NCBI GenBank assembly: GCA_964234715.1
Contig: OZ174284.1
Reading direction: 5' to 3' (one strand)
Origin: Podarcis melisellensis
Taxonomy: Eukaryota
Length of the DNA: 64,000 bases
In this document: piece by piece, positions 46,522 to 64,000 of the stretch
Position numbering within the stretch: the first letter of the stretch is position 1
Layout: every line of letters begins with the position of its first letter
Made by a program: the position numbers and the translations under genes
The notes under the pieces: generated by a model
The model's database searches: none
What the model was told of the DNA's origin: nothing
What the model saw: only the letters and a program-made list of their open reading frames with translations

Positions 46522-46652
46522 CTGAAAACGAAAGAGAAGGTGTCACTGGAGAAGCTGCAGCAATCCAAATGTGAGCAGGTTAATGCCTTTAAAAACGTAA
46601 TCACAGTTGCATTATTTATTATATGAATTAACGGTCCTTAAACGTTACAGGA

Positions 46653-47008
46653 GGGACGCGGGTGGCGCTGTGGGTTAAACCACAGAGCCTAGGACTTGCA
46701 GATCAGAAGGTCGGCGGTTCGAATCCCCGCAAGAGGGTGAGCTCCCGTTGCTCAGTCCCTGCTCTTGCCAACCTAGCAGTTTGAAAGCACGTCAAAGTGC
46801 AAGTAGATAAATAGGTACCGCTCCAGCGGGAAGGTAAACGGCATTTCTGTGCGCTCCTCTGGTTCACCAGAAGTGGCTTAGTTATGCTGGCCACATGACC
46901 TGGAAGCTGTATGGCAGCTCCCTCGGCCAATAAAGCGAGATGAGCGCCACAACCCCAGAGTCGGTCACAACTGGTCCTAATGGTCAGGGGTCCCTTTATC
47001 TTTACCTT
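46653..47008 (+). mobile_element. Full-length Sauria SINE
   Basis: A box GGTGGCGCTGTGG, B box GGTTCGAATCC, TTTACCTTT tail, degenerate TSD TAAACGTTACAGG/TAAAGCTTACAGG. Confidence 0.93.
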
Positions 47009-47214
47009 TAAAGCTTACAGGCAAAACTGGGATTTCAAGCTTTTTTATGACGCTGAAACACTGATGTTGCACTCCTATATGCACTTACCTGGGAGTATGT
47101 CAGAATGAACAATATAGGGTTGGCGTATTTCAAAAAGTGAAAATCTGGACACAAAAGGGGGGGCAAATCTAAATAAAAAAAGGAGATGTTTTTGAGCTAT
47201 TTTGGGGGAAATTC

Positions 47215-47507
47215 ATGCTGAGCTCCAGGGATATGTGCATTTATCAGACCAAAATCAACCCAGGCTTGCCCATCTGCTTTGATGATTCTAGATAACATTG
47301 GGTCAATCACACACACAGACACAGACACACACACAGACACACACACACACCCCCATGGCGGCGGCAACACATTAAAATGTTTGCCCTATCAACTTTTGAT
47401 GGTACTTTCTGTGCCTACCATGGTGACCAATCAGTTACGGTTCCTTTGTTCACTCCCACCGTTCCTTGGATAACTGTAGTAATTCTAGAGCTAATAAATG
47501 CCAACAA
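47215..47507 (+). pseudogene. 18S rRNA 5'-domain pseudogenic fragment, circularly permuted
   Basis: Recognisable 18S motifs GTGCATTTATCAGACCAAAA, TCTAGATAAC, TGCCCTATCAACTTT, GTGCCTACCATGGTGACCA, followed by ATCAGTTA.GGTTCCTTTG and TTGGATAACTGT.GTAATTCTAGAGCTAATA. Confidence 0.9.
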
Positions 47508-47515
47508 ACTTATTA

Positions 47516-47688
47516 TAGGATTGCCATATTTCAAAAAGTGAAAATCCAGACACAAAAGTTGTCGAACGCTTTTCCCCCCTCATTGCAAAGTTGTTGAGCT
47601 TTCTCTTTTTTGGGTGGGGGAAGAAGGAAATCTCTTCGATGAACGAATCCCATCTATGTCCAGGAACTTCCGAATGCATGGCAGCCAG
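47516..47688. mobile_element. hAT (Tip100-like) MITE; a second truncated left end lies at 47115-47210
   Basis: TAGG.TTG.C.TATTTCAAAAAGTGAAAATC..GACACAAAAG repeated at 47115 and 47516. Confidence 0.65.
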
Positions 47689-48039
47689 AAGACATGCCCA
47701 GGATTTCATTATTATACTTGTAGGTAGTTTCAAGTCATCTACAAGAGCCTTTATCTGAATGCCATATCTAACTTTTAAAATTAATTATTGTATACTAAGA
47801 ACGTATATTAAATTAATCGCTCTCATTTACAGCATTTCTGGAAACTGAACAAAATGCTTCTGATGTACCAGGCACAAAATTCTAGAAACAGTTGCACAAT
47901 TTACTCCTGCCTGGAAATCTGTAGTAGTACCATTACAGATCTACATTCTTATTTTATAACAGCACTGAAATGTGTATTAAGGTATTATAGTTTTGCTTTA
48001 TGAACCTTTTCATTTTCTCTAGAAACTGTGGTCAGTGAG

Positions 48040-49560
48040 AATTCATGTCACCTGAGCACAAGAGTGTCTGATTTATTATTATACTGAATGCATACCATGC
48101 TGAGCACTGGATGGTTGGCAAAACAGCATCCACTACAGTCTGCTTTTGCAGCCTAAATTGCAGCAGCTGAAACACAATGTGGTGTGGGCCTTCCACCGAA
48201 TAATATTTTACTTTGATGTTGAACCAGGCAAACCACGTATTCCAGTATCAGTCTTAAGTTGTTGAGGGTTTTGCCTTTAAGGCCATGTTTTGAAACTCAT
48301 ATGCAAGAAAGCTTGTTTGCTGTTGTTAACCACCTTGAATGGCTCATTCAACTAATTTCAAGAAGGGCCAGATCTGTGGGAAGTTTTCCTATCCTTATTG
48401 CATGTGTGATCTGATACCTGTATGCTTGATCAGTAGACAGATCCTTTACAACATTGTCAATCAGTGAAGTAAGAGGCTCTCCAATTGAGAGTTTGGTGAA
48501 TGAAAGCTCAATTTCAAGTTATGTAGAAGTGTCTAGTATCTTACCAATGTTACCTGTCCACTTGTTGTTAGAGAAGGTGTTCCCATCAAGTGTTGTGATC
48601 TAGTGTTGCAAGGGTAGGTCATTGGTGCAAAGAGCACAAACCAACCAGATCAAGCTTACGACCAATCTTGACCTGTACCCACTGCATGGTAACATGCTCC
48701 CAGCCAGTGTTAGCATTTGTATAATCACTTTCAATGGCCTGAAGGCTCTTACCAATGCCCTTCGTCTTCATGACATCTACAAGATCATTAGCAATAACAT
48801 CAGCTGTTTTTTTCTCTCTTTGAGCCTTTTTCCAGAGTGAAGTAGTAGAGATATATTTCACCTGGCTCACTGTACACAGAATAATGCTGTTCTGATGCTG
48901 GGGAACTGGGAAACTGCCATTGTGAATTGTCTGCTTTCAACATAACTTTAGTTGTATCTTCATGACTATCAGAGGAGATGCAGTCAATTTCACCCTTCTG
49001 ACAAAGATAATCCAATTCCTGATCCAGAGACTACATAACTTTTTATTGGGCTCCCTTGACTTTATTGTGATAAACTCCAAGTCTCTTGTCCTCTCGGTGA
49101 TCAAGCCAGCATCCATAAAGGTGGTTATGGTGATAGCAGCTGTGGCACGCAGGCTAACACCCAATCCGATGCTCTGCATAGCAACATTATGTATTTCTAA
49201 TGATGTTGTACTCTGCCTTTTTATTAGAAGTGGAAGGTTTACTTGGTTTTCCTAAAGTCAATTCATAACGTCCATCATTTCCATCTTGGACATCAGGTAT
49301 TTGTTCTTTTATTTTCATCAGCAGAGAAAATTATTTCATTTGATGGTATGGAAGCATCCTGTTTACTTCTTTGCTTATATCCAGCAAGGCTTCTTCTCTT
49401 GCCTTCTTGCTGCTTCCACTTTTTGACTTGCCTGTTATTTTTCCCAAGCAAGAGGATATCCCACTGAGTCCAATTCTTCAGCCTTAATTCTTCCAAGAAC
49501 TTGGAAAACTGCAGTTTATGTAACAGCAATTGCTGGCTGCTCATTTCGTAATACTGTGAG
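48040..49560 (-). mobile_element. Decayed DNA-transposon DDE transposase (tentatively Sola2-like); multiple stops and frameshifts
   Basis: Stitched frames give GVSLRATAAI..DAGLIT, EQHYSVYSEPG, LQAIESDYTNANTGWE, RKL-IWLVCALCTNDLPLQH, DLSTDQAY, HSRWLTTAN, AWFNIK, SAWYAFS. Confidence 0.7.
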
Positions 49561-59638: not shown

Positions 59639-61125
59639 TGAAATAATATAAATAGCTTTCAATAAAAGAGCCAAATGGTTCTCAGGAAACAGTTAAAAGA
59701 CTAGAAAGCCAATCATTTCAACAGAAATTACCCAGGATACAATCCATTCCCCCTTTGCATTTAACCCATCACTTTTCATGCATGGGGATTTCTTCCCACT
59801 GACCCATCCCCTCTCAGCAGCCCTCCTGTGGCCAAAAACTGGACTCACAGGACATTTATACATGCTCAATGGCATATACTAAATGGACCTCAATTGGACA
59901 CATGCTCAATGGACCTTTCCATAACCCTCTGTTCACCTTAAGTACCAAAACACAGCTGGATCTCACAGTGGAAATGCCTTTGTAGGTTTAAATGGCTTGC
60001 AGAATATAGTCTATTTAACTCCATTCATCCATGTACCAGTAAAGCCTTATGTCAAAAAGTGTACAAAAGTGCAATAGCTAGATTCCCCCATTCTTTTCAA
60101 GATTCCAGCACTCAAAGAGTTTCAGTCTTCCATAGCTCAGATCTCAAACAAACTTCCTTAAAAAGAACTTAAAATGTTAGTTAATCTGTTGACATTGCTA
60201 AAAGTAGATCTGGACATAAATTAAGTCATAGCTGGAAATATGAAACACGGGCTGAAATTCAAAAGACCTGAGTTATTCCAGCAGCAGATGATGAATCCAC
60301 TTTTTTGACACGAATCTAGGCTCAGAAGGGCTAGCTGGCTGTAGAAAGTGCTCAAATATCACACCCATAGGCAACACAGTAACTTTTTAGAAAGCAGATA
60401 GCACATGGGACCTGAGAGTTCTGCTTCCAAGCCCTAGCACAGACTGTTGCATGGTCTTGGATACATCACTTCTCAGCCTTAATTTCCAATCTGTAAAAAA
60501 AAATACATGAATAAAGCCTTGCAATTTGCTAGTGGTGTGGAGCACTTTCCCTAGTGAGTAAGGCGGACAAAACTTGAAATGAAGTGACACACCGTGTATG
60601 TTGCAACGGTTCTTTATAATCCCTTCTGAGTTTGCAAAATCTCACAAAACAAAACACGAGTTTTTCAGCTGTTTTTAATGAAATTAACCAAAAGCTACAC
60701 TTCCTACATTTATGCGATTTCCAACATTTAACCGATTTCCGCCCAGACGCTGTTTAAAAAGGACATATGGCAACCCTATATAGTCCCATTGGAAAAGGTA
60801 TATTCTACTGAATTCCAGCATCATACTGTACTTTGGACGGAGAAAAGAGACTGCCAGAATCCCAAACCGCAACACAGTTTTGTTGCATTTTACAAAGTTC
60901 ATGATATCAGACAGAATGCCATTAAGGTAAATGTAGATATTATATATAAGCGCCATATATGTATCCCAAAGAGTATCATCTCTGTTTGAAGCCAACAGTG
61001 CTTCAGAATCTCTTTCCTTTATGGTCAGCAACCCATAAAATCTCCACTTCAACAGTCAGCTGTCCAACAAGTCCGCTCTCCCATTCAGACAGAACAAACC
61101 TGAATAAAAGAAACACAGTACTTAC

Positions 61126-63500: not shown

Positions 63501-63611
63501 TTGATTCCTGCATATAGGTAGCCTCGGGACAATAGAAAAGGAACCGGTGCAAAAATCCACCTTAAAAGTTCTGGGAAAGAAAGCACGAGAAATCGAATCC
63601 CAGTTGGGTTC

Positions 63612-63873
63612 TAGGGTTGCCAGATTTCGAAAAGTAAAAAAACCAGGACACCCCGAAAGTTCGTAGGAAGACCCCAAACTGCTGAACGCTTTTTTAAAAG
63701 GAAACCACCTAAATCATTGAGCTTTTTAAAAGGGAAAGACGTGGAAAAAACCCCATGATTTTTCGATTGACTTTCCTGAACTCCAGGACAAAGCACCACT
63801 TTTGGGAAGTTCCCCCCCAAATGTCAATTCCGCCTTTGAAATCCCAGTAGTGTCCAGACGTATGGCAGTCCTA
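63612..63873. mobile_element. hAT (Tip100-like) MITE upstream of the promoter
   Basis: TAGGGTTGCCA...TGGCAGTCCTA inverted ends; related ends at 47115, 47516-47688 and about 60765. Confidence 0.7.
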
Positions 63874-64000
63874 AACCCATAGAAGGCAGCCAGAACAAAC
63901 CCCCAAAGTAAGGCGGTTAGTCTCACTGGACTGGGCAAAGATGCTTAGGGAGGAGAGGGGGCTGCACTCTAGGTTGATGCTTGTCTGCTACTGGATTTTT

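Follow-up and report, generated by a model that had tools for sequence, protein, structure and literature searches.

A decayed 18S rRNA fragment with exactly swapped halves in the genome of Podarcis melisellensis

Insertions whose parts stand in permuted order are among the few genomic traces left by circles of DNA or RNA that have re-entered germline chromosomes, and the known cases comprise circles of back-spliced mRNA on the one hand and segmental duplications of very large size on the other. The former were described by Dong et al. (2016, Cell Res; PMC4897178) as circRNA-derived pseudogenes, which carry a non-colinear junction and have no poly(A). According to the same paper, the appearance of a circle could also arise from an open, structured RNA if reverse transcription crosses between its closely spaced ends. 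As for the latter, Takahashi and Innan (2020; PMC7188851) reasoned that two parts swapped without gap or overlap point to a circle that was opened at a new position before its reinsertion; their screen did not extend to cases under 500 bp, and evidence for reintegration in cattle and yeast is cited in their work.

Here, we describe a 293-base decayed partial copy of 18S rRNA, located in non-coding DNA of Podarcis melisellensis (contig OZ174284.1), in which the two halves are exactly swapped. The analysis covered a stretch of 64,000 nt of this contig, referred to below as the window, and all coordinates are positions within it.

Two 18S segments in exchanged order

The fragment consists of the following features; L003 is a metagenome contig carrying a short piece of 18S, to which we return below.

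47215-47429, + strand: segment A, decayed, corresponding to 18S model positions ~181-355 (cmscan E 3.3e-4); its first 48 nt align without gaps to the L003 18S, immediately following the end of B
47308-47350, + strand: (CA)n microsatellite within segment A (TRF period 2, 21.5 copies), where 18S has a TCGCACGC-type stretch
47429-47430, + strand: non-colinear join of A and B, where model position 355 is followed by 104/105; the A at 47429 is common to both segments
47430-47507, + strand: segment B, corresponding to 18S model positions 104/105-180 (cmscan E 2.4e-5); its last 26 nt show 3 mismatches to the L003 18S

The assignment to 18S comes from Rfam scans in which each segment was treated as a single piece. 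Positions 47429-47512 matched positions 104-185 of the model SSU_rRNA_eukarya (RF01960) with 23.9 bits and an E-value of 2.4e-5, while 47200-47436 matched positions ~175-360 with 21.6 bits and an E-value of 3.3e-4, the latter alignment being reliable from ~181. Both scores fall under the gathering score of this model, which is 50, as expected for decayed fragments of 80-240 nt. Scanned at the gathering threshold, the whole window of 64,000 nt gave no Rfam matches. An E-value scan of 900 nt around the locus missed the SSU pieces and returned SCARNA7 alone, a spurious minus-strand match caused by the (CA)n/(GACA)n microsatellite.

Both segments lie on the plus strand, A before B, whereas in native 18S B stands directly before A. 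Together, they make up one unit of ~252 model positions (104/105-355), or 293 nt with the microsatellite, the ends of which were placed against the Rfam consensus and not against native lizard 18S. No further 18S or other rRNA homology was found in the flanks of A and B. The locus is an 18S-derived pseudogene fragment and not a functional gene: unlike a full-length, colinear 18S gene with intact helices, it covers model positions 104-355 only, is permuted and CpG-mutated, and contains a 36-nt microsatellite insertion. It is dead, decays neutrally and has no present function, being a single-locus fossil rather than a working element.

The exchange of the two halves is exact at both of its points. 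When the end of B (47482-47507) is joined to the start of A (47215-47262), the composite aligns without gaps across the permutation point to positions 1144-1217 of L003, with 61 of 74 positions identical; the reference for the opening point is L003 alone, i.e., 74 nt of a foreign, vertebrate-type 18S from a metagenome contig, which we do not take for human. The loss at the opening point amounts to 0-2 nt, the two doubtful bases being 47215-47216, which read AT against GC in L003 and represent either two transitions or foreign bases. At the join of A and B, base 47429 aligns to model position 355 in the scan of A and to 104 in the scan of B, leaving a 1-nt overlap with nothing inserted. This overlap was judged against the Rfam consensus and not the native sequence, and it decides nothing between the explanations considered below. 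The initial annotation of this stretch had recognised the two segments and claimed that B lies upstream of A in native 18S, in the same orientation, with little lost at the break. The order is borne out by the two Rfam scans and the L003 alignment, and the small loss by the gapless alignment of B plus A. Its coordinates and quoted strings also proved correct on reading 46600-48200, the clear 18S match in A beginning at 47217.

A comment on the reference itself is in order. L003 is the metagenome contig MAVL01000320.1 (1-1217), the terminal 78 nt of which (1140-1217) are vertebrate-type 18S that starts abruptly at ~1140 after unrelated sequence. This 18S part begins ~20 nt ahead of the permutation point seen in the lizard locus. 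Either this contig was assembled as a chimera, or it represents a further dispersed fragment of 18S in some eukaryote. No fuller non-human 18S reference was found in the genome and viral collections, and the metagenome scan yielded this one usable piece of 78 nt; the other two candidates of that scan, L001 and L002, were rejected as chance bacterial matches.

The exactness of the permutation bears on the possibility of a tandem origin, according to which a B-A-B-A array, produced by local duplication or as a multi-unit rolling-circle cDNA, would have lost its first B and its last A. Rolling-circle reverse transcription of circles generates concatemers, and the A-to-B join is what a tandem array would contain. 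However, trimming such an array to one unit to within 0-2 nt would take two deletions with matching end points, and the sequence just outside A and B is not 18S. By our estimate, which is not a computed value, A and B would come to share the same edge by chance, whether through a trimmed tandem or through two template switches, in ~5 cases in 250, i.e., 2%. We consider a tandem origin quite improbable.

The copy is old and has long existed as neutral, methylated DNA. Thirteen mismatches separate it from the L003 reference: nine of them fall at the 16 CpG positions, all in the direction of decay, and four at the 58 non-CpG positions. Today, the rRNA piece has 4 CpG against 61 TpG plus CpA. The microsatellite is another mark of age. 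It can be described as (CA)21 with GACA variants at 47308-47350, set in a wider (CA)n/(GACA)n stretch at 47300-47352. In the Rfam alignment, 47 nt of the window stand where the model has 11, after a TCGCAC-like stretch, meaning that ~36 nt were added. Probably, the microsatellite grew out of a CpG-decayed TCGCACGC-like stretch of 18S, followed by expansion by ~36 nt.

Such decay is also relevant to another explanation, an assembly or scaffolding artefact in which rDNA-like reads were joined in the wrong order. Nothing specific supports it, apart from the general proneness of rDNA-like, repeat-rich DNA to misassembly. The heavy CpG decay argues against an artefact made from live rDNA: both segments are equally heavily decayed, unlike functional rDNA. 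Moreover, an expanded microsatellite lies inside A, and the joins are located within unique, decayed sequence. An artefact thus appears scarcely credible.

Flanking repeats, filler and the site of insertion

The rRNA piece does not directly adjoin ordinary flanking sequence on either side, but is enclosed by two copies of a direct repeat and by additional bases at both joints:

47113-47157, + strand: left 45-nt direct repeat, the start of a MITE-like repeat family (89% identical to 47514-47558, BLAST E 2e-11)
47158-47214, + strand: filler of 57 nt without rRNA homology
47508-47513, + strand: 6 nt (ACTTAT) between B and the right repeat, matching neither the 18S reference nor the left flank
47514-47558, + strand: right 45-nt direct repeat, with 5 differences from the left copy
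47559-47690, + strand: probable, weakly supported remainder of the MITE-like repeat starting at 47514 (likeness to 63650-63900, shuffle p ~0.02)

The two 45-nt copies are spaced 401 nt apart, start to start. Three of the 5/45 positions at which they differ fit independent decay of a shared CpG (e.g., CTGG versus CCAG). Since the rRNA piece and the repeat copies have decayed to a similar degree, the duplication and the insertion fit a single event.

Four occurrences of the first 19 nt of the repeat were counted in the window, where 0.03 would be expected; the copies other than the flanking pair lie at ~63610 (+) and 60780 (-). In all four copies, similarity starts at the same TAGGGTTGCC-type motif. 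Four copies with a common start mark the 45-nt repeat as the beginning of a dispersed repeat family. The initial annotation had overlooked the flanking repeat, its family and the microsatellite. An element of ~275 bp occupies 63605-63879; its termini form an inverted repeat of 18 nt (TGGGTTCTAGGGTTGCCA and its near-complement), and short inverted repeats also occur inside it. This element has the left end motif in common with the repeat flanking the rRNA piece, and its inverted terminal repeat gives the family its MITE-like character. The fourth copy of the end motif (TATAGGGTTGCCATAT) is located on the minus strand at 60762-60784. The interior following it resembles 63650-63900 only weakly and in dependence on the gap setting, with a shuffle p of 0.003 under lenient gap penalties and 0.44 under stricter ones; this copy may represent a related element family that has mainly the terminus in common.

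Several further readings of the flanks were tried and given up. We dropped the idea that the repeat at 47514 is a complete MITE, since its right inverted arm was not significant (p 0.28-0.77). The 57-nt filler shows a weak collinear likeness to what follows the second repeat copy, at 47514-47558 (shuffle p 0.016-0.05); its interpretation as a second decayed end of B, which would imply more than one unit, was rejected after comparison with 18S (shuffle p 0.39). When the direct repeat was extended to the left across AATG..AACAA, so that it overlapped B at its end, the similarity was not significant and might be a microhomology at most. The clear 18S match in A opens with 15 nt (47217-47231, CTGAGCTCCAGG) that also resemble the interior of a repeat copy at 63776-63787, with 11/12 matching positions (p ~0.07). 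For these bases, the 18S reading was kept over a repeat-derived one because all differences but one are CpG transitions; the likeness may be due to chance or to a microhomology that served in forming the left joint. Immediately before the locus, at ~46650-47010, lies a GC-rich (0.54) SINE-like stretch with, as judged by eye, a tRNA-like head and an ACCTTT-type tail, in which neither ARAGORN nor Rfam called a tRNA.

The layout described above could be taken as evidence of capture by a transposon, with no circle involved. A MITE-like element would have picked up the 18S cargo, A and then B, by gap repair after excision or by template switching during replication, and the resulting arrangement (left end, cargo, left end plus body) may be a mobile composite of the Pack type. 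The piece is indeed flanked on both sides by the start of a repeat family, of which more copies exist at 63612 and 60780, and the likeness of the filler to nearby sequence fits such a process. However, two independent switches would have to share an 18S nucleotide, to within 2 nt of ~250 (the same rough estimate of 2%). Outer inverted repeats are represented by a left end motif in four copies, against a right arm with the p-values of 0.28-0.77 already given. Moreover, no target-site duplication surrounds the whole composite, the flanks at 47105-47112 and after 47690 showing no match, and BLAST revealed no second copy of the locus within the 64,000-nt window. We regard capture of this kind as unlikely; in a version where a circle served as the template, it would merge with the circle explanations.

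Signs of LINE activity were likewise sought at the joints. No 3' A-rich or LINE-type tail stands beside the right flank, where the last base of B, 47507, gives way to ACTTAT and the repeat. The flanking repeat is 45 nt long, against ~5-20 nt in target-primed reverse transcription, and the implied nick site is not T-rich/AA and not L1-like. The initial annotation had remarked that the usual signature of target-primed reverse transcription is missing, and these observations agree with it. It had also pictured a plain integration of a circle; the permutation in this picture stands, but the insertion was not a clean one, given the 45-nt repeats and the 57 and 6 nt of extra sequence. A long duplication at the boundary of a repeat family, together with filler and the lack of a tail, points instead to break repair at or beside a DNA-transposon end, and not to the LINE machinery.

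The ends of the unit in the rRNA fold and the nature of the proposed intermediate

The positions of the unit's ends acquire additional meaning in the Rfam consensus structure. Model positions 106-109 pair with 307-310, forming the outermost helix of a multi-branch subdomain, and a hairpin (311-359) follows directly after position 310 without a spacer. The unit starts 1-2 nt ahead of the helix 106-109/307-310 and stops 1 nt short of the strand that closes the hairpin 311-359. In other words, its ends at 104/105 and 355 lie at the same helix junction in the consensus structure, though 250 nt of sequence separate them. The opening point falls within an unpaired linker (174-180), and the piece consists of mature rRNA only. 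Very roughly, we would expect a fragment of 200-400 nt to show such adjacency of its ends by coincidence in 10% of cases, this figure being an estimate and not a computed value. The adjacent ends, the opening in a linker and the restriction to mature rRNA argue for an RNA intermediate, while under a DNA microcircle they would be coincidences. Between the two kinds of circle, we therefore favour an RNA-level origin, judging from the consensus fold.

Such evidence induces us to propose, tentatively, the following scenario, in which a circular or circle-equivalent intermediate at the RNA level was copied into cDNA once around and captured by end joining at the repeat. The source would have been a compact piece of 18S (model positions 104/105-355), comprising a closed multi-helix subdomain and the next hairpin of the 5' domain. 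After excision, either the two ends of this fragment would have been ligated to each other, or the fold would have brought its 5' and 3' termini next to one another. Starting from a primer in the single-stranded linker (model position ~180), a reverse transcriptase may have run as far as the 5' terminus, passed over to the 3' terminus and continued synthesis until it came upon its own start or primer. The product would be a cDNA exactly one unit long with permuted ends. Its insertion would not have taken place by classical target-primed reverse transcription; rather, the chromosome would have broken where a MITE-like repeat starts, and end joining would have taken up the cDNA there, with duplication of the first 45 nt of this repeat and addition of filler of 57 nt and 6 nt at the two joints. 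Break repair of this type, at or beside a DNA-transposon end, could have involved staggered ends that were filled in, or an aborted gap repair followed by end joining.

The attraction of this scenario is that a circle opened once, or a closed path copied exactly once, gives swapped halves without a gap automatically, and that a reverse transcriptase meeting its own primer explains the exact length of the unit. From these features of the locus, we infer that the intermediate was RNA, that it was copied once around and that end joining captured the product. A covalent circle is not required, as a jump across the close ends of a folded fragment gives the same product; our literature search brought up no circular rRNA fragment from a eukaryote, covalent circles of 18S pieces included. 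The initial annotation had derived the locus from a small circle, naming DNA first. What holds of this derivation is that one contiguous stretch is present once, swapped, with 0-2 nt missing; the covalent circle, on the other hand, has become unnecessary, and RNA is favoured over DNA.

The alternative is a circle of DNA. In this case, a microDNA of ~250-300 bp would have been excised from an rDNA unit; a single cut at 18S position ~180 would have opened it, and end joining would have returned it to the chromosome at the same break. MicroDNAs typically measure 200-400 bp and stem from GC- and CpG-rich genic sources. The unit fits this description with its ~252 model positions, or 293 nt with the microsatellite, and with 16 CpG positions in the 74-nt reference; a unit length of ~250-290 nt and a CpG-rich rDNA origin suit microDNA equally well. 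Furthermore, rDNA is a known source of circles (PMC10946416), an exact swap without gap or overlap is the published criterion for eccDNA-mediated duplication (PMC7188851), and insertion by end joining with duplication and filler needs no reverse transcriptase. What a DNA circle leaves unexplained is why the ends of the unit meet at one rRNA helix junction and why the piece is confined to mature rRNA, and the circle junction offers a microhomology of 1 nt only. To our knowledge, there are few reports of germline reintegration of circles of microDNA size. Taken together, we consider the DNA circle possible, though rather doubtful.

Returning to the RNA-level intermediate, it is tempting to extend the scenario and to suppose that vertebrate germline cells turn the folded 18S subdomain (model positions 104-355) into a closed circle, or into a template with abutting ends, that is reverse transcribed once around and fixed by break repair. 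In this general form, the idea is speculative, and we would sooner doubt it than rely on it. If true, it would amount to a splicing-independent route to 'circRNA-derived' pseudogenes, one that can be read from rRNA structure. End points at a helix junction also offer a concrete way to separate an RNA-level from a DNA-level origin.

Comparison with known systems

Among the described systems, the circRNA-derived pseudogenes (PMC4897178) resemble the lizard locus in their tail-to-head junction, in a content limited to that of the circle, in the lack of a real poly(A) and in an unknown route of insertion. However, they consist of back-spliced mRNA exons joined at splice sites, often in many copies, while the lizard locus is derived from mature 18S, has its junction at a helix junction and is known in one copy. 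In the strict sense, a circRNA-derived pseudogene contains the back-splice junction of annotated exons, and the source here is an intron-less mature rRNA.

With eccDNA-mediated duplications (PMC7188851), the locus shares two parts that are swapped without gap or overlap. The published cases are segmental duplications of 20-130 kb with a single-copy donor, whereas the lizard unit measures ~250-290 nt and comes from a multicopy rRNA gene or from RNA. At the level of sequence, the locus shows the features expected of an insertion derived from a circle, i.e., swapped halves in the same orientation, no gap or overlap (0-2 nt lost) and a preserved junction.

Ordinary rRNA pseudogenes and LINE-mediated retrocopies of small RNAs are similar in being truncated, CpG-decayed copies of an abundant non-coding RNA that lie in introns or between genes. 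Unlike the lizard locus, which is permuted, tail-less and flanked by a 45-nt repeat, they are colinear and usually have a tail and short target-site duplications. As in Pack-type or composite DNA transposons, a CpG-rich host fragment lies between two transposon-end copies of the same direction; capture alone, however, leaves the exact permutation unexplained.

Overall, this kind of event is already known, and what is new is its source, mature rRNA or rDNA, its small size and the agreement of its end points with RNA structure. By itself, the locus is one neutral fossil, and its value lies in the search pattern it provides for a genome-wide screen. Compared with the cases described before, it shows that a piece of this kind can be inserted at the end of a transposon, accompanied by filler and a long duplication, and it extends the signature of permutation to the most abundant cellular RNA or to the locus most prone to form circles.
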